A DNA stretch of 64,000 bases from Zancudomyces culisetae HAW-14-8 (Eukaryota > Fungi > Kickxellomycota): the NCBI GenBank assembly GCA_052426225.1, contig JBNJNM010000021.1, forward strand, positions 1,116,001 to 1,180,000, in the 5' to 3' direction. The position numbers were made by a program, and so were the translations under genes. Position 1 is the first letter of the stretch, and each line of letters begins with the position of its first letter. Below, one piece after another: positions 2,514 through 49,555 of the stretch. A model generated the notes under the pieces. It had not been told where the DNA came from and ran no database searches. It saw nothing but the letters and a program-made list of their open reading frames with translations.

Positions 2514-2884
2514 CTGTCGTATAATAAAGAAATTTTATTTATACCTAATGTAAAAACAATATAATTTGTAACTCTAAGTAAGTATTATCCTTGATAACTA
2601 ATACCACTTAAAGATTAACTTGTACTGATATATTGAGTGATTAGAATCTAATATTTATTAATGTGAACCAAAAAATCTGATAGATAAAACTCTCACAAAA
2701 ACTCTACCAAACCTTAAATAAAAACTAATTACGATTAAAGGGATTCAATTTTCATTGTTTTTCCTTTACGTAATTTTAGCCAATAAAACCTATCTAAAAT
2801 AACTTTATAAAATTGAACTAAAAAATATACTAAAATAAACAAAACTAAACTAAAACATAGTACTATTGTACTATACGACAGTTT

Positions 2885-5800
2885 TGTTAGCGAGTTGGTT
2901 CTTTAACCTCGCTTAATTAAAAACTGTTATTTACTTTGATAACTAAATATGTATTTAACTATATTTATTCAAGTTTAAAATATATATAAGTTATAGACTT
3001 CTAGTAAATAGATCAAAACTGAATTTATTGATATCTTTCGACTTACTGAAAAACTTCAAGTATTTATAACTTAAAAACTAACTAATACTTAATAAACTAA
3101 TATAAAACTATATAATAATTTAAACCTATTTTTTTGTTATTAATTCTAATCTAGAAAAAACCCGAAGATCAAAAAAACTAAACTAGAACCTTGTAATGTT
3201 AAATAAACTAATTATAAACCTTAGCAGATCATATATTTTGACCTACAATATTAATAATATAAATAATATAGATAAACAAACCTAATTGGAGTGCCGATTA
3301 TATCGTGGTTAGAGGTGATCTACGCCACTATATAACAGTACCCCCCCTTTTAAGCGTGGATTCCCACATCACGCTCTCGATGTTTAAACCTTTTAAGAGT
3401 GGTTTTAAGTCTTGTCGTTACCTCGGGGATCATGTTGTTACTTGCATTATACATTTTTAGAAGATCGCCATTTACCAAATCTCGACTCCCATGATTATCG
3501 TTAATGATATATGCGCCTTTAGCGAGCACTCTTTCGACTTGGTAGGGCCCTTCCCAATAACTTTCTAGTTTTGACTTTTCGATTTCGACTCGTTTCAAAA
3601 CGTAATCACCGATTTTGAATTTGTAAATTTTGACATCTCGATTATACCTAATTTCCATTGCCTTTTTGGCAATTACTGAATTTCTATAAGCTAGTGTTCT
3701 TAGTTCCGGTAAATCTACTTTAAAACTTTTTATCCTACTAAGTATGTTATCTTGTATATTTTCTATATCTCCATTATACACCCAAGTACTAGGCAAACTT
3801 ACATTTACACCATATAATAGCTCTGATGGTGTAAATTTTGTAGACTTATTTTTCATTGTTCTTACCACCAGTAAACTTCTCCAAATAAACGAATCCCAAT
3901 TATCTTTATCATTTTTGCATTGTTTAACTAAAATTTCCATTAGCGTCCTATTAAATCGTTCTACTTGACCATTGCTTTGAGGTCGATAAGCGGTAGTTGG
4001 TCTATGGTCCAATCCTAACCACTCAAAAACTTTTGTGGTACTTTCTGAAATGAAACTCGAACCTCTATCACTTATTATTTGTTGAGGTACCCCATATGGT
4101 GCAATAATATCGTTAATTATAAAATTTATTATTGTTTCGCTTAATAAATTTGGTACTGGCACCGCGATTGGCCATTTTGTAAAATAATCAATTGCAGATA
4201 AAATATAACGATTTCCACTTTTAGAAATTGGTGCAATTGGCCCAATAGCATCAATTCCAATAATTTGAAATGGCTTTGAAGTTATTATTGGAACTAAATT
4301 GTTTCGTTTAGATTTTCCTCCATTGTATAATTGACAAATATGGCAGGATTTTACAATTTCTACTACTTCTTTATATAAATTTTTTCCTGTATATTTATTT
4401 GAAACTCGAGTCCAGGTATTTTCGATTCCCTCATGGCCCTCGTTATGTATTCGTAAAATAACATCCTTAAAATTTTTTTCATTTAGTACTTCTTTTAATT
4501 CATTTTTTACTTTTTTATATAATTTATCACCTAAAAGACGGAACTGTCTCGACCTGTTTTGTATTTTTTCTCTTTCTTTATCTGTTGCTCCATCTGGGTA
4601 TTCCATCTTTGAGAGGTAAGTTACGACGTCCGAATAATCGAGTAGATCCATAGCGTATATGTCTAACTGTTTATCACTTTGCGAAATATTAGGGTTTCTT
4701 GAAAGTCCATCTGCAGGATTATTTTTACCCGGTAGGTGTTCAATTATATAATCATAACTTCTCAGTATCATTGCCCATCTAGCAATCCTACCTGAGATTT
4801 CAGAACCATTAAATATATTAAGTAAAGACTTGTGATCGGTGCGGATTATAAACTTCCGTCCCCATACATAGTATTTATATTTCCTTACAGCCCATACCAC
4901 GGCTAACGCTTCTAAATGGCTAATCGAATAGTTCTTCTCAGCTTTGTTCGTAGTACGACTAGCGTACTCAATTACTCTTTCAGCTCCATTAATTGTCTGT
5001 GAAAGTACTGCTCCGATGCCAGCAACAGATGCATCAGTTGTAATTATAAATATTTCTTCCCAGACAGGAAATCCAAGAACAGGTGCTGTGACTAGTTTCG
5101 ACTTTAGTTCTTCCAAAGCTTGATTTTGTTCTTCTCCCCAACTCCAGGTGCTATCCTTTTTCAATAACTTAGTAAGTGGTCCTGCTATGTTGGAATATCC
5201 GTTTATATACTTTCTATAATAACCCGTCAAGCCTAAAATGGATTGAAGTTCTTTAACATTGTTAGGTGGTATAATTTTCTTAATAGATTCGATCTTAGAC
5301 GGACTGGTACCGATACCGTTTTTCGAAATCGTATGACCGAGATACTCGAGTTCTAATTGACCTACCACACATTTTTCTTTATGCAATTGGATCCCATTTT
5401 TCCTGAGTAGTGTAAATACTTCCTTTAGATCATTTTTGTGCTGTTCTACACTTTTTGAATAAATAATGATGTCGTCAACAAAAACAACTGTATTTTTCCA
5501 CAACACGTCTTTCAGTACCACTTCCATAGCCCTTTGAAAAGTAGCAGGACTGTTTGTCAGTCCGAATGGCATTACGTTGTACTGGAAACTACCACCACCA
5601 GGTATAGCGAATGCTGTCTTACATTTATCACTTTCTCTCATCTTAATTTGCCAAAAGCCGCTTAACGCGTCTAATGACGTAAATATAGTTGCTCCGGCTA
5701 ATGCCATAAACAGGTCATCGATGACAGGTAAAGGATAGGCGTCTTTACGAGTTACCGAATTCAATTTTCGATAATCCGCGCATACACGAAGCTTACCATT

Positions 5801-8232
5801 TTTTTTTAAGACAACGACTACTGGAGAACACCATTCGGAGATACATGGTTCAATCACACCTCTTTTTTCCATTTCTTCGAGTTCTTTTCTCACTTTTTCT
5901 TGAGTTTTTTGAGGCATCCTATACGGTCTTAGTTTAATTGGGGTTTCATCAATTAAATCTATCCTATGTTCCATAACATCTGTTTGTTGGAGTTCAGAAA
6001 TATCATCAACAAATATATCTTTAAACTCGTTTAACACTTCTTTAAATTCTTCAGGATTAGCTTCTATCTTAGATACCGTTTCCTCTTTGCATAGCAAATA
6101 AAGTTCTTGTTCTTCCTTATGTGCTGTATTATAAGTAAACATCGCTAGTTTGGTGGTTATCTCAGCGTTTTCAATAGGTAGTCTTAACTCTGGGATACGT
6201 AGATTTAATGATACGCGATGTTCTAACAACCAGTCAGTTCCAAGGATTAAAATATCTTCGTTCCGGTCCATTACCCACAAGTTAACCGGGAACATAAAAG
6301 AAGATACTTTTAGTGGTACATCACTGACTTTTCCTAGAGTAGTATGACGTTTTCCGTCTGCGGTTACGATTACTTGTTTTGAATAGCTATCTGGGCTTAA
6401 CCCCCATTCTTCAACTAAATTTGAAGTCACTACTGAGCACGCCGCTCCAGTGTCTACGACCGCCCAAATACTCTGACCAAATACTTTCACTAAAGCTTTA
6501 CAGTTAGATAGCTTTTTTGCCTCTACTTCAAATTCATTAACTTCAGAAATTCTTTTATTATTAATGTACTCAACCATCTCTTCTTTCATAGAAGCAGAAT
6601 TATTCAAAAGTTGCAATACATTTACTTTTAATGAGACTTTTTCAAGTTCTTTTATAATAGAAAAGGTATCATTATTATCTGACTTTGACATAATATTTTC
6701 CGAATTTTCTACAACTGATGGTGACGAAGTAGATTTATCAGTATTTTGGTTTTGCTGGGGATGCGTTTCCTGAATTCGAGGTCTTCCAGGTTTTCTTACC
6801 CTCTCATAATTTTCTGGACTATTTTTTCTTTTTTCAACCGAAAAGATATCCTGCTCAATAAGGTCGGATTCATCCGCAATTTGAATATAATTAACAGATT
6901 TTTCCGATTCAACCTTAATTGGTTCTTCCTTAGTAAACTTAATCAACTCAGGGCACTCATTCCTAGTATGTCCATCCTTTTGGCAATTGTAACAAACTAC
7001 TTTTCTTGGTCCCATAAATCGTGGTCTGTTTCTCTCAGCTTCTTTAATTTTTTTATCAACCACTTCGTCAACTTTATTAAGTAAGTTGACACTTAACTCA
7101 TTAAACATTTTCATAAATTGACCTAAAGGTTTCTGGTCTTTCACTAATTCCTTTACATTTTTACCAGATTTACTGGCCGCGTTGCGGTTATATTCTTTAG
7201 GTTTTGCTTGAGACTCTTTATATTCTCCCTTGTTAAAACTAGTGCTACGAACTTCCTCTTTTATCAGTCTTGTTATAATTTCTGACCAACTAGAGATGTT
7301 TTCATTTTCAACTACTTTTAGACTTTCAGGGCGAAGTGTACTCAGTAACCAATCAGTTCTTACAGCCACTTCTGTAACTTTGGCACTATCTAGTAAACTT
7401 GTCAATTCAAGTTCAAGCTCTTCCACTGTATCAAACTCAGCTTGCTTTATTGTACGTAATCTTCCCCAGATCTGTGATTTAGACTTTACTACTGCAAACT
7501 TCTTAACAAATTCTTCCACAAAGTTCTCCCAACTGGTGAATGTAGACTTATTCTTCTTGTACCATACTTTTTCATTGTTACCTAAATAAAGTTTTACAAA
7601 ATCCACCCAGTCATCTTGACCCCATTTGTTAAGCTTTGCAACCAAACGAAATTCTTCAATCCAATCTTCAGGGTCTGAGTAACAACCTGCATGAAAAGTT
7701 TTAGGTGCATTCATTATTACTTAATTTTGATATAGAATTTAATAAATATTTAAATTAGATATCCTGTCGCTGACGCCACTGTTAGCGAGTTGGTTCTTTA
7801 ACCTCGCTTAATTAAAAACTGTTATTTACTTTGATAACTAAATATGTATTTAACTATATTTATTCAAGTTTAAAATATATATAAGTTATAGACTTCTAGT
7901 AAATAGATCAAAACTGAATTTATTGATATCTTTCGACTTACTGAAAAACTTCAAGTATTTATAACTTAAAAACTAACTAATACTTAATAAACTAATATAA
8001 AACTATATAATAATTTAAACCTATTTTTTTGTTATTAATTCTAATCTAGAAAAAACCCGAAGATCAAAAAAACTAAACTAGAACCTTGTAATGTTAAATA
8101 AACTAATTATAAACCTTAGCAGATCATATATTTTGACCTACAATATTAATAATATAAATAATATAAATAAACAAACCTAATTGGAGTGCCGATTATATCG
8201 TGGTTAGAGGTGATCTACGCCACTATATAACA
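2885..8232 (-). mobile_element. Full-length Ty3/gypsy element B
   Basis: 453-bp LTRs 2885-3337 and 7780-8232 (one difference seen), PPT at ~3341-3351, PBS 7761-7778, TSD GTTT. Confidence 0.97.
3350..7714 (-). CDS. Single-ORF Gag-Pol (CCHC, PR, RT, RNase H, integrase; no chromodomain), element B
   Basis: 1454 aa; CYNCQKDGHTRNEC, VDTGAACS, VFVDD, TDAS, HHCC zinc finger, D..SDRG..E, WEGPY. Confidence 0.96.
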   Translation of the reverse strand: MNAPKTFHAGCYSDPEDWIEEFRLVAKLNKWGQDDWVDFVKLYLGNNEKVWYKKNKSTFTSWENFVEEFVKKFAVVKSKSQIWGRLRTIKQAEFDTVEELELELTSLLDSAKVTEVAVRTDWLLSTLRPESLKVVENENISSWSEIITRLIKEEVRSTSFNKGEYKESQAKPKEYNRNAASKSGKNVKELVKDQKPLGQFMKMFNELSVNLLNKVDEVVDKKIKEAERNRPRFMGPRKVVCYNCQKDGHTRNECPELIKFTKEEPIKVESEKSVNYIQIADESDLIEQDIFSVEKRKNSPENYERVRKPGRPRIQETHPQQNQNTDKSTSSPSVVENSENIMSKSDNNDTFSIIKELEKVSLKVNVLQLLNNSASMKEEMVEYINNKRISEVNEFEVEAKKLSNCKALVKVFGQSIWAVVDTGAACSVVTSNLVEEWGLSPDSYSKQVIVTADGKRHTTLGKVSDVPLKVSSFMFPVNLWVMDRNEDILILGTDWLLEHRVSLNLRIPELRLPIENAEITTKLAMFTYNTAHKEEQELYLLCKEETVSKIEANPEEFKEVLNEFKDIFVDDISELQQTDVMEHRIDLIDETPIKLRPYRMPQKTQEKVRKELEEMEKRGVIEPCISEWCSPVVVVLKKNGKLRVCADYRKLNSVTRKDAYPLPVIDDLFMALAGATIFTSLDALSGFWQIKMRESDKCKTAFAIPGGGSFQYNVMPFGLTNSPATFQRAMEVVLKDVLWKNTVVFVDDIIIYSKSVEQHKNDLKEVFTLLRKNGIQLHKEKCVVGQLELEYLGHTISKNGIGTSPSKIESIKKIIPPNNVKELQSILGLTGYYRKYINGYSNIAGPLTKLLKKDSTWSWGEEQNQALEELKSKLVTAPVLGFPVWEEIFIITTDASVAGIGAVLSQTINGAERVIEYASRTTNKAEKNYSISHLEALAVVWAVRKYKYYVWGRKFIIRTDHKSLLNIFNGSEISGRIARWAMILRSYDYIIEHLPGKNNPADGLSRNPNISQSDKQLDIYAMDLLDYSDVVTYLSKMEYPDGATDKEREKIQNRSRQFRLLGDKLYKKVKNELKEVLNEKNFKDVILRIHNEGHEGIENTWTRVSNKYTGKNLYKEVVEIVKSCHICQLYNGGKSKRNNLVPIITSKPFQIIGIDAIGPIAPISKSGNRYILSAIDYFTKWPIAVPVPNLLSETIINFIINDIIAPYGVPQQIISDRGSSFISESTTKVFEWLGLDHRPTTAYRPQSNGQVERFNRTLMEILVKQCKNDKDNWDSFIWRSLLVVRTMKNKSTKFTPSELLYGVNVSLPSTWVYNGDIENIQDNILSRIKSFKVDLPELRTLAYRNSVIAKKAMEIRYNRDVKIYKFKIGDYVLKRVEIEKSKLESYWEGPYQVERVLAKGAYIINDNHGSRDLVNGDLLKMYNASNNMIPEVTTRLKTTLKRFKHRERDVGIHA

Positions 8233-8237
8233 GTTTT

Positions 8238-11200
8238 TGTCAGATACTAACGTTTTTATGCTAGTATCTCTTATATTTAATACTACTATGCTAAATATAA
8301 AACTATGTTATTCTATTTTTAAATAATACTATGTTCTATTTCAGACCTAAGTTGTATATCTTTTTATTCCTAAATTAACTATTTATTGTGTAACATTTAT
8401 AAAAAACTAACTAAAAAACTCTTATATAAGATACTACTAAAAAATTATATTTAAAAACGAAATGTTATTAGAAAAAATCACTAGGATAAAAAAAACTAAT
8501 GCATTTCGGATTCGTAACCAGTTACGAATCAATTGTCAATTTGCTATATGACAGCTCCCCCCTTTTAAGCGCGGATGCCCTCATTCCGCCGGGACTGCTT
8601 AAATCGCTTCAACTTAGTCTTCAGTGTCGTTGTTACATCCGGAATCATATAGTTGCTGGTGTGGTACTTCTTAAGCATATCTCCATGAGCTAATTCTCTG
8701 TTACCTTCTTGATCACTTATAACATACGCACCCTTGCTTAAAGCTCTTTCAACCGTGTAGGGGCCTTCCCAATAATGTTCGAGTTTTGACCTCTCCATGT
8801 CTACCAACTTAAGAACCTTCTCACCTACCTCAAACCTATGGTACGTGACACCCTTGTTATACCTTGTTGCCTGTGAACTTTTGGCTTCGATAGAACTCTT
8901 ATGAGCCAGATTTCTCAACACAGGTAAGTCGTCATTTATCTGTTTCACCCTGCTTAAAATCAATTCCTCTACGTTTTCAATTTCTCCATTGTACTTCCAT
9001 GTAGTGGGTAGTGAAAGCTCAACGCCATACAGCATCTCCGCCGGACTGTATCCAATCGATTTATTTCTCAAAGTTCGTATTACCAGTAGAGTTTTCCATA
9101 GGTAGGCATCCCACTTCTGTTTATCATTCCGACATTGCTTAATCAATACATTCATGAGAGTTTGGTTCAGTCGTTCCGTCTGACCATTACTCTGAGGCCT
9201 GTACGAGGTCGTGGGAGTGTGGTGTATACCCAACCACTCGTACACTTGAGTCGCACATTCAGATAGGAAGCTGGACCCACGGTCACTAATCAGTTGTTGA
9301 GGTACTCCAAATGGTGCTATGACCTCATTTATAAGGAAATTTATTACGGTGTTACTTTGTATATTGGGTACAGCTAATGCAATAGGCCATTTCGTGAACA
9401 GGTCTATAGCCGTCAAGATGAACCTGTTTCCACTAGCGGAAATCGGTGCTATTGGCCCGATTGCGTCAATTCCGACTATCTGGAAAGGTTTCGTTGTAAC
9501 TATTGGAACCAGTGGATGCCTTTTACTTTTACTACCCTTGTATAATTGGCATACCGGGCAACACTTTACGATTTCCTTGACCTCTCTATATATATTCCTA
9601 CTGGTATACCTCTGTGATACACGCAACCAGGTGTTTTCTATGCCTTCGTGCCCTTCGTTGTGTATTGACTCAACTACTTGGCGGATATTTCCTCGATGCA
9701 AAACCTCTTTCAAACATCCTTTTACTTCTTTCATTAGTTTACCCTTATCGATTTTATATAGTTTAGATCTTCTCTTTAGCCTTTCTTTGTACTCCACATC
9801 TATATTGTCTGGTAACTTCTTTTCCGTAAGGTACTGTTTTATATCTTCGTATTCTAAAATTTCCATGGCAAACACGTCGAGCTCTACATCATCCTGTTCA
9901 TTCTCATTCTCAGTAACTAGTCGAGACAGAGCATCGGCTGGGTTGATAATTCCGGGTAAATGCTCTATGGTACAATCAAAACTACGTAGGACCATAGCCC
10001 AGCGTGCAACACGACCTGTTATATCTGGGCTATTGAACAATTGGATTAACGACTTGTGGTCGGTTCTGATTCTGAACTTTCTACCCCATACGTAGAATTT
10101 GAACTTTTTAACTGACCAAACCACGGCCAAGCCTTCCAAATGGCTTATGGAGTAGTTTTTTTCTGCTGGAGTGGTGGTTCGGCTTGCATACTCTATTATT
10201 TTCTCACCTTCGCTGGTAATCTGAGATAACACACCTCCTATTCCTATTGCTGATGCGTCCGTGGTGATCACAAACTCGACGGTCCAGTCTGGATGACCTA
10301 ATACCGGTGCAGAAGACATCAATACCTTCAATTGTCTAAGCGCCTCTTCCTGCTCGTCACCCCAGTCCCATTTTACAGACTTCTTCAGTAGTTGCGTTAA
10401 GGGACTGGTGACCCGAGAATAGTTAGGAATATATTTCCTGTAATATCCAGTCATCCCTAATGCCGATTGCAATTCCTTAACGCACGTCGGAGCCTTTATA
10501 TTGTTTATAGCTTCCACTTTCTTTGGGCTGGTTCCTATCCCCTTGGCGGATATTGTGTGCCCTAGATATTCGAGTTCTGTAAATCCTATAACGCATTTAT
10601 CCCGGTGGAGCTGTATTTGATTCTTTTCTAATAATGCTAAAACCTTATCCAAATCTTCCGCATGCTTATTGATTTCTTTCGAGAAGACGATAATATCGTC
10701 CACAAAAACTACGGCACACTTCCATAACAGAGGTTGTAGTACTTTTTCCATTGCGCGTTGGAACGTCGCCGGACTATTCGTTAGTCCAAACGGCATGACG
10801 TTATATTCAAAAGCGCCACTCCCTGGGATGGCAAAGGCTGTTTTTGCTTTGTCGGCGCTATGCATACGGATCTGCCAAAATCCGCTCATGGCGTCAAGGC
10901 AGCTAAACACAACCGCGCCAGACAAAGCCATGAACAGATCTGCGATAACAGGGAGCGGATAACTATCCTTTCTTGTCACCTCATTGAGCCTCCGGTAGTC
11001 GGCGCAGACGCGTATCTTTCCGTTTTTCTTATGGACTATCACCACTGGAGCGCACCATTCAGAAGTTGTCGGTGAAATAATTCCCTGTTTTTCCATTTCC
11101 TTTAATTCATGCAATACCTGCTCTTGCTGCCTATGCGGTATCCGGTAAGGCCTGAGCTTGATAGGTGTCTCATCTTTTACCTGGATACGATGTTCTATCA

Positions 11201-13412
11201 CGCTAGTTTGAGTGAGCTCGGAAAGGTCGCTAACAAAGATGTTGTTATACTTATGGATTACACTTTCAAGCTCCACCTCCAGGCACGATCCTCTTCCTAC
11301 TGGTCCTTGCTTTAAGATAGCGTACAGTTCAGCTTTTTCATCTTCCATGTTCAAATCTGCGGATGTTTCTAGCCTTGTAACTACTTCCACGTTTTCGATT
11401 GGTATCCTTAGTTCAGGTACTTTAAGATTCAACGAAGCCTTATGTTGTAGTAACCAATCGGTTCCTAGGATAAGAGTATCGTCATTTCTGGACATAACGA
11501 TCAGATTTACTGGTAATATGAAGCTTGCAATCATTAACGGCACCTGCGACAACCTTCCTAGGGTGTTATGCCTCTTCCCATCCGCCGTCACTAATGTTAG
11601 CCCACTTTTACTATCCATGTCCAATCCCCAACCCTCCATTAGGTTGTAAGTAACAACGGAGCAAGCCGCCCCTGTATCCACCACTGCCCACAATTTTTGT
11701 CCGAATACTTGCACCATTATTCTGCAATTAGATGTTTTTCTTTCTTGAACTTGTATTTCGTTTAGTTCCATAACCTTGTCCTTTTTGAGGAAGCTCTTCA
11801 ACTCTTCTGAGTATATTGGGGCATTCTCAATTAACTGTAAAGCATCAATTTTTGGGTAGACCTTGCGCAACTCTTCGATAATGGAGAAGGTCTTGTTGGT
11901 GCCTTTCAACAGCTGGTAGTTTTTACCTCTTGAAATGTTTGATTCTAGCCTATTCTCATCTCCCAGCGATTCATCCCCAACTTCCGCTGTCGGATGGGCC
12001 ACACCACTGGTCTCTTCCGGTGTAGAGTGGACTCCCCTAGTGCGTGCGGTCCTGTACTTAGTAGGGCGTTGTTCTGTTGCTCCACTGGCTATGTCACTGT
12101 GCTTTCTTTTATCAATTGCATACACCTGTGCATCGTCTTCCACTGCACTATGGTTCTCAATTACCTCAATATAATTTATGTTCTTTTGAATGTCTACCTT
12201 GCTACCATCGCTTGAACCGCTTTCTTTTATCTTCGGACACTCATACTTACGATGGCCTATTTCATTACACGAATAACATTTTACCACAAAGGGCTGTACT
12301 CTTCTATTACTTGTAGCCGCTTCCTTAAGTTTTTGATCAACTACTTGCTCTACTTTTGTGATCAGACTCACACTCATTTCCTCGAATCTTTTCATCATGT
12401 CACTGTACGCTACTGAGTTTTTTGCAATTTCCTTAACACTTTTCCCTTTTGATGCAGCGTTCGTGGTATAATCCTTCGCTTGAACTTTAGAATCCTTGTG
12501 ATCCCCTTTCTTTGGACTTACCACTGAGCCATCCTCAACCTTTGTGATTAATTCAATTACCTTATCCCACTCAGTTATGCTGTTTTCTTCAACTTTCTCT
12601 TTAAATTCTACTCTAAGTGTACTAACTAAAAAATCGAATCTGTTCCCAATATCTTTGATGTTAGCTTTATTTAGTAAATGATTCAACTCCACTTCAAGTT
12701 CTTCTATACTATCAAATTCAGACTGTTTAATCGATCGCAACCGATTCCAAATTTTCTCCTTTGAATCTGTAGTACCATATTTTTCTTTGAATCTTTTGCT
12801 TAATTCCTCCCAGCTGGTAAATTTTACTTTGTTCTTCTTGAACCATATCTTTTCCTTGTTCCCTAAAAATAACTTCACAAGGTCAATAAGGTCATCTTCC
12901 GGCCAACTATTCAACTTTGCGACCAGTTTGAAGTCCTCAATCCACTCTGCTGGATCTATCCCTTTTCCAGATTCAAATTGCTTTGGTGATGTTATAACCA
13001 TTTTCTTTATCTCTCTATAATAGAATTATTATTTTCTAGTCGAATCCTTAAATGAAAATAATCTGAAGGACTTATAGGTCCCACAGTGATCGCCACTGTC
13101 AGATACTAACGTTTTTATGCTAGTATCTCTTATATTTAATACTACTATGCTAAATATAAAACTATGTTATTCTATTTTTAAATAATACTATGTTCTATTT
13201 CAGACCTAAGTTGTATATCTTTTTATTCCTAAATTAACTATTTATTGTGTAACATTTATAAAAAACTAACTAAAAAACTCTTATATAAGATACTACTAAA
13301 AAATTATATTTAAAAACGAAATGTTATTAGAAAAAATCACTAGGATAAAAAAAACTAATGCATTTCGGATTCGTAACCAGTTACGAATCAATTGTCAATT
13401 TGCTATATGACA
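8238..13412 (-). mobile_element. Full-length Ty3/gypsy element C
   Basis: 316-bp LTRs 8238-8553 and 13097-13412, identical by eye; PBS 13078-13095 (GTCCCACAGTGATCGCCA); PPT ~8556-8566; TSD TTTT. Confidence 0.97.
8565..13001 (-). CDS. Single-ORF Gag-Pol, element C
   Basis: 1478 aa intact, with CCHC, PR, RT (FVDD), RNase H and IN motifs. Confidence 0.96.
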   Translation of the reverse strand: MVITSPKQFESGKGIDPAEWIEDFKLVAKLNSWPEDDLIDLVKLFLGNKEKIWFKKNKVKFTSWEELSKRFKEKYGTTDSKEKIWNRLRSIKQSEFDSIEELEVELNHLLNKANIKDIGNRFDFLVSTLRVEFKEKVEENSITEWDKVIELITKVEDGSVVSPKKGDHKDSKVQAKDYTTNAASKGKSVKEIAKNSVAYSDMMKRFEEMSVSLITKVEQVVDQKLKEAATSNRRVQPFVVKCYSCNEIGHRKYECPKIKESGSSDGSKVDIQKNINYIEVIENHSAVEDDAQVYAIDKRKHSDIASGATEQRPTKYRTARTRGVHSTPEETSGVAHPTAEVGDESLGDENRLESNISRGKNYQLLKGTNKTFSIIEELRKVYPKIDALQLIENAPIYSEELKSFLKKDKVMELNEIQVQERKTSNCRIMVQVFGQKLWAVVDTGAACSVVTYNLMEGWGLDMDSKSGLTLVTADGKRHNTLGRLSQVPLMIASFILPVNLIVMSRNDDTLILGTDWLLQHKASLNLKVPELRIPIENVEVVTRLETSADLNMEDEKAELYAILKQGPVGRGSCLEVELESVIHKYNNIFVSDLSELTQTSVIEHRIQVKDETPIKLRPYRIPHRQQEQVLHELKEMEKQGIISPTTSEWCAPVVIVHKKNGKIRVCADYRRLNEVTRKDSYPLPVIADLFMALSGAVVFSCLDAMSGFWQIRMHSADKAKTAFAIPGSGAFEYNVMPFGLTNSPATFQRAMEKVLQPLLWKCAVVFVDDIIVFSKEINKHAEDLDKVLALLEKNQIQLHRDKCVIGFTELEYLGHTISAKGIGTSPKKVEAINNIKAPTCVKELQSALGMTGYYRKYIPNYSRVTSPLTQLLKKSVKWDWGDEQEEALRQLKVLMSSAPVLGHPDWTVEFVITTDASAIGIGGVLSQITSEGEKIIEYASRTTTPAEKNYSISHLEGLAVVWSVKKFKFYVWGRKFRIRTDHKSLIQLFNSPDITGRVARWAMVLRSFDCTIEHLPGIINPADALSRLVTENENEQDDVELDVFAMEILEYEDIKQYLTEKKLPDNIDVEYKERLKRRSKLYKIDKGKLMKEVKGCLKEVLHRGNIRQVVESIHNEGHEGIENTWLRVSQRYTSRNIYREVKEIVKCCPVCQLYKGSKSKRHPLVPIVTTKPFQIVGIDAIGPIAPISASGNRFILTAIDLFTKWPIALAVPNIQSNTVINFLINEVIAPFGVPQQLISDRGSSFLSECATQVYEWLGIHHTPTTSYRPQSNGQTERLNQTLMNVLIKQCRNDKQKWDAYLWKTLLVIRTLRNKSIGYSPAEMLYGVELSLPTTWKYNGEIENVEELILSRVKQINDDLPVLRNLAHKSSIEAKSSQATRYNKGVTYHRFEVGEKVLKLVDMERSKLEHYWEGPYTVERALSKGAYVISDQEGNRELAHGDMLKKYHTSNYMIPDVTTTLKTKLKRFKQSRRNEGIRA

Positions 13413-13415
13413 TTT

Positions 13416-13747
13416 TGTTATAGAATTTCACAATTCTATGATTATTTAATATTCTTATTGTATTATATGTTTATTACTATGTATATTATTTTTGTATTAT
13501 TGTTCTTTTTAATACTATATATGTTTAACTTAATATTTTGTTAAGATGTGTTTTTATTTAATTCAAAGTGGGCGGTTGCTTTAACCCCCAGATAATAATA
13601 TAATTAATGAGGAAATATAATGTAAATAACTAACTAAACTATTGGACAAAAACCACAGGGGGAAAAAAGGTCCAATCTCAAAACTATTAACTAAAAACCT
13701 AATGAATAAATAAAGCTAATTATATAAAATCGTATCTTCATACGACA
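13416..13747. repeat. Solo LTR (related to the ~21813-22087 LTR)
   Basis: TGTTAT...TACGACA; shares the ACTATTGGACAAAA(A)CCACA-GGGG-AAAAGGTCCAAT block with the 21.9-kb copy; followed by GTTT. Confidence 0.75.
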
Positions 13748-13751
13748 GTTT

Positions 13752-14177
13752 TGTCGTATGAATAAATAGATGATAATGTATAGTAGGTTAATCTACTGTA
13801 AATCTCTATTATTCATACTGATTGTCTGATTGTTGCAGATGCTTGCTCATCTGTTTTCACCATTGTGGTTTTCCTTTGTGCAGCAACAATCAGACAAAGG
13901 TTTACTTTATTACTATTAGGATTTTATAGCACTTTATATAACAAACTACTTAAATAGCGACGACAAGGTCTAAGGATACCTTGTTCGGGATTTTATACTC
14001 TTTCTTCTAGCGTTTATTATACCAACGATAACTAAATAAAAGATTCTTAACTACAGTTAACTAGTTATTTTAGGAAGGTCCTGGACCAATTTTAAACATT
14101 AAGTAATAGTGATTACAGCTTCGTCGTACTGTAATACACTCAATATTTTTATACAATATACAATTTTTCATACGACA
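13752..14177 (+). repeat. Solo LTR related to the element G LTR
   Basis: TIR TGTCGTATGAA...TTCATACGACA; GTTT on both sides; shares TTTTCACCATTGTGGTTTT and CGTCGTACTGT with 31049-31432. Confidence 0.88.
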
Positions 14178-14181
14178 GTTT

Positions 14182-14644
14182 TGTCGTATTAGTATTTATA
14201 GTATATGTATGGGCACTTTATCCCACTGGGTTTTTCCCCATACATTTGTTTAATTATTAGTTTTAATATCATTTAATTTTATTAACGCATTTATATGTTT
14301 CAAAATAAATCAGTGTAATTTATCATGCGGATAAATTACACCAAACCACGTGTGTTAACACGGGGTAACGATGCTGTTTTGAGTGAACTGTTAACATGAT
14401 AAGAAATGTAGGGGTAGAAAAGATAAACAACGCATCAATAAATAAAACATGTTTGAACAACAGAAGAACATGTTAGTGATTTCAAAACAATGTTGACATA
14501 CAGAAAAACTATATAAACCCCAACTTTTCTTCACTTTTTGAAAGAAGAAATGAAACTATTATTTTAAATATCTTATTACTTTATATATATAATAAAACTT
14601 AATTAATAAATATTCACTAGTATACAAATAATAAAAATACTACA
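14182..14644. repeat. Solo LTR
   Basis: TGTCGTATT...AATACTACA flanked by GTTT/GTTT; its left part resembles the reverse complement of the right end of 59329-59703. Confidence 0.82.
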
Positions 14645-14648
14645 GTTT

Positions 14649-17600
14649 TATTAGCGAATTCCAGGTTCCAGTTCGCTATTGTGTAAAAAATATATTTATT
14701 TGATAGAAAAACTATACTATGTACTAATGTTGTTAAGTTTTCACTATAGTAACTATAACTTTAATAAATAGACCAAACTTGTATTTTACGTGTTTATTTG
14801 ATGATGTTTAAACTATCTGAATAACTATCATATTTATACTTTTTTAAAACAACTATTAAACTTAAAACCTAAATATATTTTAAACTTAAAACTATACTAA
14901 TTATTAATAATAATCTAGAATGTTGCTGTAGATTAAATCCAGAAGGATAAAAAAAACTAGGCAACACATAATATACTAAATAACCTGTAATAAATATTAA
15001 CTTATATTAAGAGATAAACCTAAATATTAATAAATAGAAATAAATATGTAATTGGTAAGTTAATATTATATAATGTCTAGAGGTAGCTCTAGCCACTATA
15101 TAACAGAACCTCCTCCCTTAAGCGTGGATGCCCTCATCTCGCTCTCTATTTTTAAACCTTTTTAGTTTTGATTTAAGCGTAGTTGTTACTTCGGGTATCA
15201 TGATCTTATTTGTGAAGTACATTTTTAACATGTCACCGTTTACTAATTCTCGGTTACCTTGATGATCGTTAATAATATAAGCTCCTTTTGAGAATACTCT
15301 TTGAACCGTATAGGGGCCTTCCCAATAACTTTCGAATTTGCTTCTGTCCATTTCGACTCGCTTCAATACTGTATCTCCAATTCGAAATTTATAATGTCTA
15401 ACATCTTCGTTGTATCGTTTTTCCATAAAATTCTTCGCTTTTATCGAATTTCGTAATGCAAGATTTCTTAACTCAGGCAAATCTATTTTAAAGCTATTAA
15501 TTCTACTACTAATATTTTCTTCTACATCTTCAATCTCACCATTATAAGTCCAAGTAGAAGGTAAACAAATATTTACTCCATATAACAACTCAGAAGGCGT
15601 ATAACCTGTCGATTTATTTTTTAATGACCTTACCACTAACAATGTTTTCCAAATATAAGAATCCCAATTTTCTTTATCGTATTTGCATTGTTTAATAAGT
15701 ATATTAATTAAAGTTCTGTTAAATCGTTCTACCTGGCCGTTACTTTGTGGCCTATAAGAAGTTGTAGGTCTATGGTTTAATCCCAACCACTCGAAAACAT
15801 TTGTTGTACTATCTGAAACAAAACTTGAACCGCGGTCGCTTATTATTTGTTGTGGAACGCCATGATTTGCAACAATTTCGTTAACTATATAATATATTAT
15901 TGTTTCACTCAATAAATTTGTAACAGGCACGGCGATTGGCCATTTTGTAAAATAGTCAACGGCTGTTAAAATGTAGCGATTTCCATTTCCCGATATTGGT
16001 GAAATCGGTCCAATTGCATCAATACCAAAAATTTCAAATGGTTTTGAAGTAATAATAGGCACCAGATAATTTTTCTTTGTTTTGCCGTCTTTATGCATTT
16101 GACAAATGTGACATGATTTGACAATCCCTAAAACATCCTTATACAAATTTTTTCCTGTATATTTACTGGTTACCCTACGCCACGTATTTTCAATACCTTC
16201 ATGTCCCTCGTTGTGTATATTAGTTATAATTTCTTTAAAATTCCTTTCGTGCAAAACCTCTTTAAATATCTTATTTACCTTTTTAAATAACTTCCCATCT
16301 TTTAAATAATATTGACGTGCTCTATTGCGAATTTTTTCTCTCATTTTGTCATTAGCACCAGTAGGATATTGCATAGAGGTAAGATATTGTACTGTATCCA
16401 CATATTCTAATATATCCATAGAATAAATATCCAATTCAATATTTGCTTTAGGATGATCTTCATTTAATATATTTCGAGACAAGGCATCAGCAGGATTGTG
16501 TTTACCGGGTAAGTGTTCAATATAGTAGTCATAGCTTCTAAGTATCATTGCCCAACGGCAATTCTACCTGTAAGCTCGGATCCATTGAATATTTGTAACA
16601 AAGATTTATGATCAGTGCGTATTTTAAATCTTTGTCCCCATAGATAATATTTAAACTTTTTAACACTCCAAATAACTGCTAACGCTTCTAGATGACATAT
16701 AGAATAGTTTTGTTCTGCTTTGTTGGTAGTACGACTAGCAAATTCAATAACTCTCTCTTCACCGTTAACAACTTGTGAAAGTACAGCGCCTACTCCAGTC
16801 ACTGAGGCGTCTGTTGTTAGCACAAATTTTTCAGTTCAAATAGGGAATCCTAGTATCGGAGCAGTTATCAATTTTTCCTTTAATATATTTATTGCATCGT
16901 CATGAATCGATTCCCAACACCATTTGGTCTCCTTGCGTAAGAGTATTTTTAAAGGTGATGTAATTTTTGAATATCATTCAATGTACCTTCTATAATATCC
17001 TGTTAATCCTAATATAGATTGTAATTCTTTGACACAAGTTGGCGGCTTTATCTTTTTTAATGTCTCAATCTTTGAAGGGCTAGTACCGACTCCTTTTTCA
17101 GAAATAGTGTGTCCAAGATACTCTAACTCTCTTTGACCTATTACGCATTTTTGTTTATGTAACTGTATCCCATTTGTTCTTAACAATAAAAATACTTCTC
17201 TTAAATCAGTTATGTGCTGTTTGATATCTTTTGAATAAATTATAATGTCGTCCACGAACACCACTGCCTTTTTCCATAAAACATCCTTTAAAACAATCTC
17301 CGTTGCTCGTTGAAATGTAGCAGGACTATTTGTAAGCCCAAAAGGCATTACATTATATTGATAGCTACCTCCGCCTGGAATTGAAAAGGCAGTTTTGCAT
17401 TTGTCGTTTTCATACATTTTAATTTGCCAGAAGCCACTGAGGGCATCAAGCGAAGTAAACACAGTTGATCCGGATAAAGACATAAACAGATCGTCAATTA
17501 AGGGTAAGGGATAGGAATCTTTTTTGGTTACAGCGTTCAGTTTACGATAGTCGGCACAGATCCTTAACTGGCCGTTTTTCTTGTGCACGACGACTACCGG

Positions 17601-20016
17601 AGCACACCACTCTGAAATGCAAGGTGAAATAACTCCCCTCTTCTCCATCTCTTTTAACTCTTGCCTAACGGCTTCTTGAGTTTTCTGCGGCATTCGATAT
17701 GGTCGTAACTTTATTGGTTTTTCTTCAATTAAATCAATCTTGTGTTCCATAACATTTGTTTGAGTTAATTGAGAAATATCATCCACAAAAATGTCAGCGA
17801 ATTCTTCCATAACTTTTTTGAACACCATAGTTTCATTATAATTTTACCAACTGTTTCTTCTTTACACAATAAATATATCTCTTGTTCTTCTCTTAACACA
17901 CTTTTATTTGTGAACATTGCTAACTTAGTTGTAATTTCCGCATTTTCAATAGGTAAACGAAGTTCTGGGATACGCAGGTTAAGCGAAACTCTATGTTCCA
18001 GCAACCAGTCTGTGCCTAGAATCAAGATATCTTCCTTACGCTCCATAACCCACAGGTTTACTGGAAATACAAAAGATGATATTTTTAATGGTATGTCAGT
18101 CACCTTACCCAACGTGGTATGACGTTTTCCGTCTGCAGTAACTATAGTTTGTTTATTATATGTATCTAGTTCTAGATCCCATTCCTCTATTAAACTTGAG
18201 GAAACCACAGAACATGCTGCGCCAGTATCCACAACTGCCCAGAGGTTCTGCCCAAACACCTTAACTAGTGCTTTACAGTTTGATAACCTTTTTTCTTCAA
18301 CATCTAGTTCGTTAACCTCAGGTAATTTTTGTTTATTAATATACTCGATTAATTCTTTAGACATTGTAGTCGAACAGTCCAAAAGCTGCAATACATTCAC
18401 CTTAAGAGACATCTTCTCTAGCTCCTCGATCAGCGAAAATGGTTTAGCGTACTCTTTTACCGTTCTACCAACCGTTGTCTGAATATTTTCTGCCCCTAAA
18501 CTACCTTGTTGATTTTCAACCCTGGTATTGCGAACTTGTGCTTGTTCTTGTAATCGAGGTCTTCCAACTCTTCTAGGTGCATCGTTATCCTGTTCAGTGG
18601 TGGATTTACGCTTTTCGACGGAAAATATATCTTGTTGAATTGGTTCTACATCATCTGAAATTTGAATATAGTTAATTGTCTTAGCCACATCTTCAGGTTG
18701 AACGTATGGTTTAGGTTTTTTGACTAACTGGGGACAATCATTTCTTGTATGCCCCTCCTGTTGACAGTTATAACATATCAATTTTCTTGGTCCGAAACTA
18801 CGTTGTTTGATTATTTCTGCTTCTTTTAACTTTTTGTCTACAACCTCCTCGACTTTATTTAACAAATTCACACTCATCTCATCAAACATCTTCAAAAATT
18901 GACCATAAGGTTTCTGGTCCTTTACTAAGTCTTTAACGTTTTTTCCAGACTTGCTCGCTGCATTGCGATTGTATTCCTTTAGCTTTGGGTCCACCTCTGA
19001 TAGCTTGCTTCTCCTTTGGTTTGTGCGCAACGATTGTTCCTCTGTTATCACCCTTGTTATTACTTTATCCCACTCACTCAGTTGCTCTTCCTCTACAATC
19101 TTCTTGTGCTCTGGTTTAAGTGTACTAATAAGCCAGTCAGTACGGATCTTCTCATCCGATATCTCGGCACTTTGAAACAAAGCTACTAATTCAAGCTCGA
19201 ATTCTTCAATAGTATCGAAATCAATTTGTTTAATTGAACGGAGGCGTTCCCAGATTTGCGATTTTGGTTTTACTTGTTTAAATTTCTTCTTAAATAATGT
19301 AGCAAAACTTTCCCAACTTGTAAAAGATGATTTATTCTTTTTATACCAAATCTTTTCGTTGTTGCCCAAGTATAGCTTGACCAGATCGGTATAGTCCTCT
19401 GAATCCCATTTATTTAACTTAGCCATAAGGCAGAACTCTTCTAACCACTCATCTGGCTCTAAACCATTACTTGCAACAAATACAGTAGGAGTATTCATTT
19501 TGTACATTAATCCAGTTACTAAAATATCAGGATACTTCCGATATCCTGTCGCTGACGCCACTGTTAGCGAATTCCAGGTTCCAGTTCGCTATTGTGTAAA
19601 AAATATATTTATTTGATAGAAAAACTATACTATGTACTAGTGTTGTTAAGTTTTCATTATAGTAACTATAACTTTAATAAATAGACCAAACTTGTATTTT
19701 ACGTGTTTATTTGATGATGTTTAAACTATCTGAATAACTATCATATTTATACTTTTTTAAAACAACTATTAAACTTAAAACCTAAATATATTTTAAACTT
19801 AAAACTATACTAATTAAAATAATAATCTAGAATGTTGCTGTAGATTAAATCCAGAAGGATAAAAAAAACTAGGCAACACATAATATACTAAATAACCTGT
19901 AATAAATATTAACTTATATTAAGAGATAAACCTAAATATTAATAATAGAAATAAATATGTAATTGGTAAGTTAATATTATATAATGTCTAGAGGTAGCTC
20001 TAGCCACTATATAACA
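14649..20016 (-). mobile_element. Full-length but frameshifted Ty3/gypsy element D (B-related)
   Basis: LTRs 14649-15105 and 19562-20016 (about 5 differences, one terminal TG changed to TA), PBS 19543-19560, PPT ~15109-15119, TSD GTTT. Confidence 0.95.
15118..19498 (-). pseudogene. Disrupted gag-pol of element D
   Basis: Split into ORFs 17765-19561, 16974-17828, 16545-16823 and 15118-16548, collinear with B; likely true start MNTPTVF at 19498. Confidence 0.92.
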
Positions 20017-20021
20017 GTTTA

Positions 20022-20276
20022 TGTTGTGTGTTGCCACGTTTAAGCTCCCATTTAGTGTTTTTTACACCAAATAACACACGGGACGGGTCATTTTACTTAC
20101 ATTTTACTTATATTCTGCGAATTATTATATAGTTATTTTGATTTAGCAAAATTGGACATTTATTTAGTTAAACAAAAATTTCAATTATATACAATATAAT
20201 CTACAAAAAATTTAACTAAAAATTACTAAACACAATTAACCATTGGAATTGTTTAACCTATTGTAGGCATACAACA
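20022..20276. repeat. Short solo LTR (255 bp), TSD TTTA
   Basis: TGTTGTGTG...CATACAACA with TTTA on both sides; GGACGGGT motif shared with copies at 21.3-21.8 kb. Confidence 0.8.
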
Positions 20277-20700
20277 TTTAGTATTATTTTTATAGAAAAT
20301 AAACTATACTAACCTATCTTTCCAGTAATTATTATTGGTATTAAACTATAAAAAATATACTTTATATGTTCTAATTTCATAGGCATAAATAGTAACTTTA
20401 TTTGCTAACATTTGATACTATCTAAAACTAATTGATTAATCAAGAGAGTAAAATTAAAACTACTAAATATACCTATTCCTATATATTTTTTTTGTTATTA
20501 TCTATTTTATGATTTTTTTGTTAGTTTTCCTTATCTTTTTTTTATTCTAAAGTTTTAGATGAAAAGAATACTGATAAACATAAATAATTATTGAAATGTT
20601 ATGTAATATAACTATGTCTATATTACATGTGTAGTAATTTTAGATTACTGAAAATTACTCAGAAATTTCCGCAACTAAACCTACAAAAAGTTCTGCTAAT

Positions 20701-21312
20701 AGAGGGGGATTGTTACTGGAGCATGTTATACTTTATTTAACCAGTCAACCCTACCTTTTAGCTTTTATTTAATTTAGTTTTATGTATTTATTACTTCAAT
20801 AAATGCGATAAAACTGGGTAAAATTACGCCCAACTCCTAAAATTTGGTGTGCAAAACAATTAATTTTGGTCCAAAAATTAGACTCTGATACCTTTCTGAT
20901 ACCCTTTGAAAATTGTGTTACGCTTCACTACCTATGTTTTTTTTTGGTTTTAGGTAGGTTTTTGCTCAAATCACAAATTTCAATTTTATAGAGTAAAATC
21001 AAGTATTTTAGAGCTAATTTGTATTTTATTTAATGAATAACTTTTAAAAATAAAAAGGAAAACCACCAAACTTGTGGTGGATTTACTAGTAATATACTAT
21101 ACCTGACTAGCTATTATATTAGAACTTTATATAGTAAAAACTTATAATAACAAAATAAACTAACGATTTCGCCTAAATTATGGGTGATAATTTCACCCTA
21201 GTAATCCCAGATTACTAGCTCGAACACCCAAGATAACGGTGGTTATTCGGTGTTTGAGAAGCTGTATGCTGTTCACCCAATGTTTAGCTTGAGTAGAACT
21301 TAGCATACAACA
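20701..21312 (+). repeat. Probable PPT plus 3' LTR of a decayed + strand element
   Basis: AGAGGGGGAT followed by TGTTAC at 20711; ends CATACAACA at 21312 with a hairpin-rich right end; no second copy to confirm limits. Confidence 0.5.
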
Positions 21313-22087: not shown

Positions 22088-22091
22088 GACT

Positions 22092-22549: not shown

Positions 22550-22630
22550 GTCTGATATATAGTGGAATTATATAACTGGATTTTCTTGTATTATATTGAT
22601 TAATTTAAATAGTATTATATTATGCACTAA

Positions 22631-22779: not shown

Positions 22780-23251
22780 TGTCATGAACTGATTCTAGAA
22801 TGTTCAAAAACGTTCTAGAATCATCTGATTTTATTCCGCAGTAATGTTTAGAATGTTCCCCAACATTCTAGAACATTACCGAAAATTCACATTATTTATT
22901 AATTTTTCTTACGTAATAATTTTCACATGTTTAATTTTATTAGCATTCGAGTTTGATTTTTGTTTGATTACTAATCCAATTTGATTAGTAATCAAACACG
23001 TTTTACTTTAACTTGCATTTTTAGCTATTCCGCAGTTTTCATAGTGATTTTGTTCAAAAACCAAGGCTGGAAAAAAGTATAAAAAGGGTACAATTTTCCT
23101 GTCTTGGATTCAGTATCTAGTATCTTGTATACATTCATACAATAAACTTTAATAATAATAAATATAACTCTCCTGACTCCAGATCTTGACACTATACTAG
23201 ATCAAAATATTATATTTATTATTTTCTGACACCAGCCTAAGTATTTTAACT

Positions 23252-24471
23252 ATGGAACCGTTTAGCCCAGAACAAGTTGAATTCCTCAACAAAGCCGCCG
23301 TGACCCTGCCAGCAGTTGAAGACGCCCTCCAGCAACTACTAATAAGAGTAGAAAAAGCCGAGTCTGCCATCAAGGAACACCCTGCCACAGTATCCAAGAA
23401 AATTTATGACAAGGTCAAAGCAGACACCACCAAGTCCATCCAGACCATTCTTGACTCCATGAAAAACCTCCAGTCCGATATCCAGAATTCAGACCAGCTA
23501 ACCCAAAGCGCCATACAGGCCAACCAGTTGGAAATCCAATCCCTTCAGGACCAGCTCAGTACCCTCAGGAACGAAGTCATACTTTATATAACTGAAAACC
23601 GTGCCACCAAAGTTGCTAGTACTTCTGAACCTAGTATCAAAGTAAGACACCCAGACACATTTTCAGGAAAACCCTCCGCCTGTTCCAACTTCTTTTCACA
23701 GCTTGCTCTCGTCTTTGCCGCTTCACCCGATAAATTCAACACAGACTCTTGTAAAGTCTTGATGCCATCTCCTACCTCTCAGGCACACCATTCAGTTACA
23801 TGGAACCTTACCTCATGAAAGCAAACCTTCCAGAGTCTGACCGTCCTGCCATCCTCTCCAACTACAATCTGTTTAAAGAAACTATCACTCGTGCCTTTGG
23901 TGATCCCAACCCTATTGAGAATGCTGATAGGGCAATCCGCCAACTCCGCCAAACCACTTCCGTTGCCGCATATGCCACCGAGTTTAGACGCCTACAGATG
24001 TTAATTGACTGGAACCAACCACCACTTATCTCACAGTTTCTATCCGGTCTCAAGTACAACGTATCCCAAGAACTCAACCGTAGAGAACCAATAGAAGACA
24101 TCGATACCCTGATCTCTACAGCCATCCAGATCGACAACCGCCTCTTCAGCCATCCACAACGTCGTCAACCTCCAGTTAACCCCACTGCAACTATGCCACC
24201 CAAACCCACTGCTTACAACCCGTTTGCTTCACCTGTTTCTGCACCATCTACCACTCCACCAGCTAATAGTGATGGACCTCAACCAATGGATCTCAGTACC
24301 GCTTCATCGACTAGAAGACCACCACTTACTCCTGCTCAAAGAGCATACCGTATCGAAAACAACCTCTGTCTCTATTGTGGCGGTAATGACCATTTCAACA
24401 TCAACTGTCCAAAGAAACGCCACAACATCTCCAGCATTACACCAACACAGGAAAACGACACCGCCCAGTAG
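23252..24471 (+). pseudogene. Gag of E with a 1-bp frameshift near 23761
   Basis: ORFs 23252-23818 and 23800-24471 together match the intact 406-aa Gag of copy F (PMDL motif, CLYCGGNDHFNINC knuckle). Confidence 0.9.
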
Positions 24472-24509
24472 ACAGTAAGGGACACCTATTGGGCAACTTA
24501 GCCAGTCCC
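24450..24509 (+). promoter_or_regulatory. Predicted -1 ribosomal frameshift signal (slippery heptamer plus pseudoknot)
   Basis: G GAA AAC at 24450-24456 in the gag frame; 6-nt spacer; stem GCCCAGTAG/CTATTGGGC; loop GGGAC can pair with GTCCC at 24505-24509; pol lies in the -1 frame. Confidence 0.8.
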
Positions 24510-28067: not shown

Positions 28068-28491
28068 GAGGGGAGGTCGTGTCATGAACTGATTCTAGAA
28101 TGTTCAAAAACGTTCTAGAATCATCTGATTTTATTCCGCAGTAATGTTTAGAATGTTCCCCAACATTCTAGAACATTACCGAAAATTCACATTATTTATT
28201 AATTTTTCTTACGTAATAATTTTCACATGTTTAATTTTATTAGCATTCGAGTTTGATTTTTGTTTGATTACTAATCCAATTTGATTAGTAATCAAACACG
28301 TTTTACTTTAACTTGCATTTTTAGCTATTCCGCAGTTTTCATAGTGATTTTGTTCAAAAACCAAGGCTGGAAAAAAGTATAAAAAGGGTACAATTTTCCT
28401 GTCTTGGATTCAGTATCTAGTATCTTGTATACATTCATACAATAAACTTTAATAATAATAAATATAACTCTCCTGACTCCAGATCTTGACA

Positions 28492-37222: not shown

Positions 37223-37239
37223 TAGGTGTCCCTTACTGT

Positions 37240-42807: not shown

Positions 42808-42810
42808 GTC

Positions 42811-43182: not shown

Positions 43183-43187
43183 TGTCG

Positions 43188-43575: not shown

Positions 43576-43851
43576 GTCGCAATATGGGTACTGGGGGTTA
43601 CACAATTGCTCTGTAACCTTATCCCCATTTGCGCAGAATGGGGTGACACACACCCCTTTGGAGGTGTAGGAGAAAGTCTGATCCCCGACGGACTCCCTAG
43701 GCTGCTACGGATCTGTATCTGACGCACGCTAGTGGTCAGATCTTTCAAGGTCTGGGGGCTTAATACCCCAGCATCCTGATCCATGCTGCTGCCAGTACTT
43801 CTTCCGGAAGATGATGAAGTGGTACTTATTACCATCTTCTCATCTTCATAC

Positions 43852-49379: not shown

Positions 49380-49555
49380 GCTGTGGTTGATTCTGGTGCT
49401 GATAGACTTCCGTCTGCACTTCTTGGTGAGAAATAAAGTGCAGGAGAATCATATAATTCTGGACTTGCACTCTTCGGTTTTGTATCCTTGTGATCATCCG
49501 TAAAAGAATGATCCTGTCGCTGACGCCATGTCGCAATATTGGATCTGGGCGTTAC

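Follow-up and report, generated by a model that had tools for sequence, protein, structure and literature searches.

Zancudomyces culisetae is a harpellalean gut symbiont of mosquito larvae. We analysed a 64,000-nucleotide stretch of the HAW-14-8 genome (positions 1116001–1180000 of contig C21 in the 27.1-Mb, 25-contig assembly), to which we refer as the window, and also read the sequence that flanks it. At 2515–20280 of the window, a stack of long terminal repeat (LTR) retrotransposon units is arranged end to end, each unit opening with TGT and closing with ACA, as established by direct reading of the junctions and by repeat mapping. The eight junctions that a preliminary description of this DNA had reported are all placed as it claimed, and the linkers that separate the units are, in order, GTTT, GTTTT, TTT, GTTT, GTTT, GTTT, GTTTA and TTTA.

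The leftmost unit, element A, is complete, because its second LTR was found beyond the left edge of the window. Its internal region (gag-pol, minus strand), recovered at full length by tblastn with the pol of element B, occupies positions 1–2514 and continues to the left, where the 3′ LTR (window −2200 to −1835, minus strand) abuts a gene for tRNA-Pro(TGG). The 5′ LTR (TGTCGTAT...ATACGACA; 2515–2880, minus strand) precedes the linker GTTT at 2881–2884, and the two LTRs are 100% identical over 366 nt. The primer-binding site (PBS) of element A, TGGTGCC..., matches the 3′ end of tRNA-Thr(AGT). Element B (2885–8232, minus strand; LTRs of 453 nt at 2885–3337 and 7780–8232, 99.8% identical) contains an intact open reading frame (ORF) of 1454 amino acids at 3350–7714, which encodes Gag, protease, reverse transcriptase (RT), RNase H and integrase (IN), and is followed by GTTTT at 8233–8237. 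Element C (8238–13412, minus strand; LTRs of 316 nt at 8238–8553 and 13097–13412, 100% identical) carries an intact ORF of 1478 amino acids at 8565–13001 and is followed by TTT at 13413–13415. Next are three solo LTRs, S1 (13416–13747), S2 (13752–14177) and S3 (14182–14644, plus strand, matching the L020 element's LTR at 97% identity), each trailed by GTTT. In element D (14649–20016, minus strand; LTRs of 455 nt at 14649–15105 and 19562–20016, 98.9% identical; linker GTTTA at 20017–20021), pol is split into three ORFs and the terminal TGT of the LTR at 14649–15105 has mutated to TAT. The solo LTR S4 (20022–20276, minus strand) is 92% identical to the R1 family, which is found beside tRNA-Thr, and is flanked by TTTA at 20018–20021 and 20277–20280.

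The stack does not end in a unique flank at 20280, as had been supposed. Positions 20281–20629 (S5) are a solo LTR with five other copies at 89–92% identity on contigs C9, C13 and C21, and positions 20630–21312 (minus strand) are a solo LTR assigned to the L28 family by 94% identity over 690 nt and oriented as the tRNA. With element A counted, the stack is at least 11 units deep. Since it continues past 20280, the empty allele predicted in the preliminary description is wrong on its right side.

The eight LTRs show no significant mutual similarity at E<1e-5 and the Gag-Pol proteins of the stack elements are 50–73% identical, which means that the units represent distinct families and not a tandem duplication, as had been argued from the LTRs. 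The companion claim that the primer tRNAs also differ stands in so far as there are at least three kinds of PBS; B and D, however, have one in common.

Every unit is flanked by a perfect 4-bp target site duplication (TSD), which is GTTT in six cases, TTTT for element C and TTTA for S4. The TSD of element C lies 1 nt further from the tRNA than the GTTT sites. The initial reading of the linkers as 4-bp TSDs with a jitter of 0 or +1 nt, and of the locus as one site of repeated, nearly nucleotide-exact integration by diverse families, thus holds. The TSD of element C extends by one base, a T, into the start of the adjacent LTR S1 and, by taking in this terminal base, shows that C was inserted later than S1. 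From the tRNA-proximal to the distal end, the identities within LTR pairs are 100% (A), 99.8% (B), 100% (C) and 98.9% (D), and the distal element D is the only full element of the stack with a broken ORF. The order of C after S1, the LTR identities and the ORF decay all fit a model in which proximal units are younger.

The tRNA-Pro(TGG) gene was identified with ARAGORN on the minus strand (L005:7720–7791), its 5′ end at window position −2209, or 2.2 kb to the left of the window. The LTR of element A stops 8 nt upstream of it, and the intervening 8 nt, AAAC|ACAC in the sense of the minus strand, run straight into the tRNA, which places the stack immediately upstream of a gene transcribed by RNA polymerase III (Pol III). 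The analogy to yeast Ty3 that had been drawn from the stack is apt. The repeated 4-mer corresponds to positions −8 to −5 of the tRNA-Pro leader, and C and S4 used positions −9 to −6.

This arrangement recurs wherever tRNA genes occur nearby: in the surrounding 204 kb, an LTR ends 6–8 nt upstream in five of five tRNA units. Three full elements are stacked at tRNA-His with the linkers AACA, AACAACA and ACA, the tRNA-Leu/Ala unit displays the TSD CGAC, and the sites upstream of tRNA-Asn and tRNA-Thr are likewise occupied. We extended the survey to 59 nuclear tRNA units, comprising these five and 54 derived from whole-genome Rfam tRNA matches, by reading the upstream sequence (40 sites were sampled at 300 nt each, and stack depth is known for about 20). 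A repeat ends 2–15 nt upstream of the first tRNA in 39 of the 59 units and 6–9 nt upstream in 32, with a mode of 8 nt, so that LTR ends lie within ~10 bp of many independent tRNA 5′ ends. A genome search with the pol of element B returned hundreds of candidate copies, many of which are same-strand neighbours spaced ~5 kb apart beside the listed tRNAs. At least 15 LTR families of this lineage, which lacks an integrase chromodomain (see below), are present in the genome.

The survey bears directly on what is being targeted. The preliminary description took the site GTTTA itself as the target, and GTTT is indeed common to the eight linkers of this stack, as expected if the integrases recognised a short motif GTTT(A) irrespective of any gene. 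Yet these families have AACA, CGAC, AAAA, AGAC and others in their stacks elsewhere, where the linkers consist of the 4 nt native to each site (AAAA, for instance, upstream of the tRNA at C21:2317387). Individual LTR families change flanks from one tRNA to the next: A is flanked by GCGA or TTTA, C by AAAA, and S1 by ACAA or AACA, the S1 family having at least 19 near-full genomic copies, including those beside tRNA-Asn and the tRNA at C6:366441, with differing flanks. As the linkers match each local tRNA leader, GTTT neither belongs to the LTRs nor constitutes a motif, and the suggested check for GTTT within LTRs or around dispersed copies found neither. The junction word ACAGTTTTGT has 152 matches genome-wide versus 110 for the control, a weak enrichment explained by each stack having its own linker. 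The determinant at this locus is tRNA-Pro, and motif targeting, the chance of which we regard as negligible, is refuted by the differing linkers at other tRNA genes.

The tRNA genes themselves are often packed as di-, tri- and tetracistronic units with spacers of 0–3 nt (e.g. L005:6921–7078 and L070:6383–6673), and the Leu(AAG)-Ala(CGC) pair has no spacer at all. Where tRNAs form such units, the retrotransposons precede the first gene. A contig of Smittium culicis contains a Pro-Val-Glu-Met cluster of this type, at which a related element with the integrase tail motif described below points, although a run of N covers the junction. The R1 family member upstream of tRNA-Thr (−994 to −7, L007/L001) has the structure LTR-PBS-(~480 nt)-polypurine tract (PPT)-LTR, with 254-nt LTRs that are 100% identical and no coding capacity, which makes it a non-autonomous user of the same target site. 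The element beside tRNA-Leu (L002/L005, window −13853 to −3087) presents an age paradox: its LTRs are 100% identical, yet those of the N1 element nested in it are 94.8% identical. In L073 of the public assembly, a related copy is without the nested N1. Possible reasons for the paradox are retrotransposition of the composite as a single unit and gene conversion.

A comparison with a public Z. culisetae assembly provides an instance of a filled and an empty site. On contig L072 (LSSK01000099.1), the unique DNA of which is 99.2% identical to this genome, the 5′ LTR of an I-family element starts right after ...TTTACTGC (L072:9131–9132), 5 nt upstream of a tRNA, and the corresponding site in our assembly (L015:9796–9800) is empty and repeat-free. 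The public isolate probably carries a first insertion at a virgin tRNA site. Another I-family LTR ends 7 nt before a tRNA-Val on the same contig. On its far side, the polymorphic element is linked through a gap to a different tRNA (Val-AAC), and the public scaffold is therefore probably chimeric at this point.

The apparent virgin-site insertion argues against self-targeting, in which the integrases would recognise LTR ends or LTR-flank junctions so that elements pile up wherever a first copy happened to land, with the tRNA being incidental. This explanation, which we consider very unlikely, draws on the fact that every linker is bounded by ...ACA and TGT..., and on a block of GTCT-linked units in the window that adjoins no tRNA. 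It does not, however, account for the distance to the tRNA, which is constant at 6–9 nt across 32 independent tRNA units, or for the insertion in the public isolate at a tRNA whose upstream DNA in our assembly is unique and LTR-free. Furthermore, the ages of the units and the TSD of element C fit insertion at the proximal end and not at arbitrary junctions.

Orientation was assigned by pol for full elements and by LTR polarity for solo LTRs. This was possible for 24 tRNA-proximal LTRs, 22 of which run in the direction of the tRNA and two in the other, and no family among these 24 has mixed orientation. The two opposite-pointing families are H, which includes the element beside tRNA-His, and L020, which includes S3; the units of the stack consequently do not all face one way. 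Fixed orientation, in both senses, appears to be the rule among these families.

Random insertion followed by selection, such that only copies in a harmless strip upstream of tRNA genes survive, would be in keeping with the compactness of this 27-Mb genome and with the standing of tRNA-upstream DNA as a classic safe haven (PMC5006619). Selection cannot, however, yield a 4-nt-wide window, family-specific orientation or the re-use of an identical 4 bp, and elements with 100% identical LTRs are already found at the exact position, which leaves this explanation highly improbable. That the stack might be an assembly artefact, with repeats wrongly concatenated, would fit the highly repetitive nature of the region, for which the one public read run found offers short scraps. 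Against this, the units belong to different families, a matching 4-bp TSD exists for every unit including the cases of overlap, the same architecture occurs at dozens of loci, and similar LTR-tRNA and LTR-LTR junctions are present in the independent public assembly. An artefact is accordingly extremely unlikely.

The protein sequences place the stack families in the Ty3/gypsy group (Metaviridae), the features of which they share: TG...CA LTR ends, PBS, PPT and the domain order gag-protease-RT-RNase H-integrase. Pfam detects Retrotrans_gag, zf-CCHC, Asp protease, RVT_1, RT_RNaseH, Integrase_H2C2 and rve, in this order, in elements B and C. The best match of Gag-Pol in the Protein Data Bank (PDB) is Ty3 (7q5b, E 3e-104), with Ty3 residues 1446–1547 left unmatched in the alignment; the integrase by itself resembles PFV integrase as much as that of Ty3. 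A PDB search with the last 200 integrase residues gave no match, the protein records contain no exact match to the element B protein, and a protein atlas search returned generic gypsy clusters to which no taxa are attached.

No Pfam match to the Chromo domain was obtained for B, C, H1 or J. The C-terminal integrase chromodomain that characterises chromoviruses is absent from the stack families and present only in the unrelated element E (PF00385). We aligned 14 integrases of different families and examined an AlphaFold (AF2) model of 400 residues, in which an N-terminal extension is followed by an HHCC domain, the catalytic core domain (CCD), a helix (266–306), an SH3-like GPY/F domain that extends to residue 367 and a further 33 residues. 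The helix, modelled at moderate pLDDT, forms an extended linker between the CCD and the C-terminal domain (CTD), as in Ty3. The terminal residues are modelled with low confidence and contain one short helix; according to this model, there is no room after the SH3 domain for a Ty3-like vestigial chromodomain.

The integrase tail is conserved. In all families it reads M-I-P-E-V, 4–5 variable residues and L-K-x-x-L-x-R-F-K, 41 residues after GPY/F, and its amino acid identity is 0.48 versus 0.36 for the linker. Where tail residues are identical, their codons differ in 58% of cases, as they do in the rest of the protein, so the constraint acts at the protein level. The motif is found at this spacing in 12 of the 16 best database matches (Zancudomyces culisetae, Smittium culicis and one further assembly) and in none of the 44 next-best. 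Judged by sequence, the tail is confined to this Harpellales lineage among the database matches compared.

Combining these findings, we conclude that the stack is very probably a layered record of repeated, Pol III-gene-directed integration upstream of tRNA-Pro, for which we propose the following mechanism. Integrases of a chromodomain-less Ty3/gypsy lineage would cut the DNA with a 4-bp stagger ~5–9 nt upstream of the mature tRNA 5′ end, presumably always at the tRNA-proximal end of whatever is already there. Each insertion would duplicate 4 bp (AAAC in the sense of the tRNA), one copy of which would be kept beside the tRNA. With a promoter that lies inside the tRNA gene, the Pol III factors would assemble there anew, so that the same position could be targeted again. 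Older elements would be pushed outward, leaving the youngest next to the tRNA, and some full elements would later have been reduced to solo LTRs by recombination between their LTRs. By analogy to Ty3, the integrase may be tethered by a Pol III factor (TFIIIB, TFIIIC or the polymerase), and the conserved C-terminal tail is a candidate for the docking or targeting element.

Several points weigh against this interpretation. The placement of the cut at the transcription start site is deduced from the distance to the mature tRNA 5′ end, and no de novo integration was observed. A public read run contains 6% of the words of the region as short scraps, and neither confirms nor contradicts the junctions, and the right junction of the polymorphic I-family insertion falls into a scaffold gap. 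The 64-kb window contains no tRNA or any other Rfam family, leaving the GTCT block without a tRNA of its own there. Finally, as the integrases lack the chromodomain that Ty3 needs for Brf1, the tether may differ or be absent.

A bolder extension, which is possible but rather doubtful, holds that Pol III targeting evolved in the Harpellales elements independently of Ty3, with the tail replacing the chromodomain and with small changes setting orientation with or against the tRNA. If true, the entire 78 kb that separate the divergent tRNA-Pro and tRNA-His genes would comprise two opposing single-site stacks, from which the order of ~20 insertions, and even a change of the target 4-mer by mutation from AGAC to AAAC, could be read.

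The preliminary description considered a stack of this kind possibly unprecedented, but the class of mechanism is established for Ty3, where it operates through TFIIIB, Tj1 (PMC4600332) and DGLT-A (PMC5006619). Tj1 of Schizosaccharomyces japonicus inserts 5–11 bp upstream of mature tRNAs with its orientation fixed, a property described as unique to it (PMC4600332). The elements studied here resemble it in being Ty3/gypsy LTR elements that integrate in a fixed orientation within the same 5–11-bp interval upstream of the mature tRNA 5′ end, and in being part of a multi-family retrotransposon population clustered with tRNA genes, a likeness that is one of behaviour. They differ from Tj1, which is Tf1-like and self-primed, in that A–D have ordinary tRNA primer-binding sites, that two families are fixed in the opposite orientation and that the host is a zoopagomycete and not an ascomycete.

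The integrase of Ty3 docks on Brf1/TBP via a vestigial chromodomain (IN residues 446–511; PMC8632968). Like Ty3 (PMC8632968, PMC5911963), the elements of the stack show position-specific integration just upstream of Pol III genes, which leaves the internal promoter unharmed, and a long helical CCD-CTD linker, here in the AF2 model. In contrast to Ty3, their integrases end ~30 residues past the SH3 domain without a chromodomain, their LTRs end 6–9 nt from the mature tRNA versus ~15 nt, and their orientation is fixed. The TSD of Ty3 is 5 bp long, as opposed to 4 bp here.

DGLT-A of Dictyostelium inserts 13–33 bp upstream of tRNA genes, with a mean of 15 (PMC5006619), and has a single gag-pol ORF, no chromodomain and a tRNA-type PBS just after the LTR, all of which, together with the tRNA-upstream insertion, are shared by the elements described here. 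DGLT-A, however, is amoebozoan and of low copy number, and deep multi-family stacks have not been described for it. In their behaviour the Zancudomyces elements are closest to Tj1, and in their build they are closest to DGLT-A.

In the literature on Zancudomyces or Harpellales together with retrotransposons or tRNA, we found no description of this targeting, and the observations add the Harpellales (Zoopagomycota), as a third fungal lineage, to those in which LTR retrotransposons target tRNA genes with nucleotide precision. The stack is a well-preserved natural record of Pol III-directed integration, a class of mechanism already known, and its interest is moderate, resting on how many families reside together, on their division into orientation classes and on the absence of a chromodomain. 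Many diverged and apparently active families with one target offer a natural comparative system for the integrase determinants of Pol III targeting and of orientation, the more so as these integrases are without the domain that Ty3 uses. Stacks in which geometry fixes the order of arrival furnish an internal clock of a rare kind with which to follow the history of transposon families, and they explain how tRNA genes seed retrotransposon-rich islands.

To the right of the stack, a second block of abutting LTR units occupies 22088–43187, with the linkers GACT at 22088, GTCT at 22550, 31433 and 42429, GTC at 42808 and TGTCG at 43183 (unit annotation at 20.3–59.7 kb is partial, being based on boundary pile-ups against a small local sequence set). 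Most of its units are oriented as expected for the tRNA-Pro stack; a B/D-like LTR fragment at 22554 is not. The block may consist of older layers of the tRNA-Pro stack that predate a change in the target 4-mer; alternatively, it may be a stack that was rearranged or was orphaned by the loss of its tRNA. Its run of units is broken at two places by copies of chromovirus E (22780–28491, plus strand, and 33220–38932, minus strand), which has 412-nt LTRs and an integrase with SH3_Tf2-1 and Chromo domains, and of which a solo LTR is located at 52405–52815. The two copies are 99.8% identical and inverted relative to each other. One is nested in element F with the 5-bp TSD CCTAG, and the other has mismatched flanks (ACGAG/ACCAG) that suggest a deletion by recombination. 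In contrast to the stack families, chromovirus E inserts within other elements and not at tRNA genes.

Elsewhere in the genome, identical pol copies are spaced 4866 and 4934 nt apart on one strand (C11:284260–296088 and C12:934945–941978), the C12 pair being just upstream of the tRNA at C12:934000–934072. This spacing is shorter than a full element and suggests tandem arrays that share LTRs, which are distinct from the TSD-separated stacks. The two arms of an inverted segmental duplication (C21:2939740–2949739 and 2979718–2989717) have a tRNA pair and a full-length element in common, and their proximal 5.3 kb are identical. Genes for 5S rRNA recur every 13.2 kb on small contigs (C1 and C4), which indicates that the rDNA repeat of this fungus includes 5S, and one further copy is located on C22. 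Within the window, tandem repeats of ~75 nt (~80% identity) have expanded at 43852–44636 inside one LTR of element J (43597–50641) and are found again 9 kb away, at 53395–53916.

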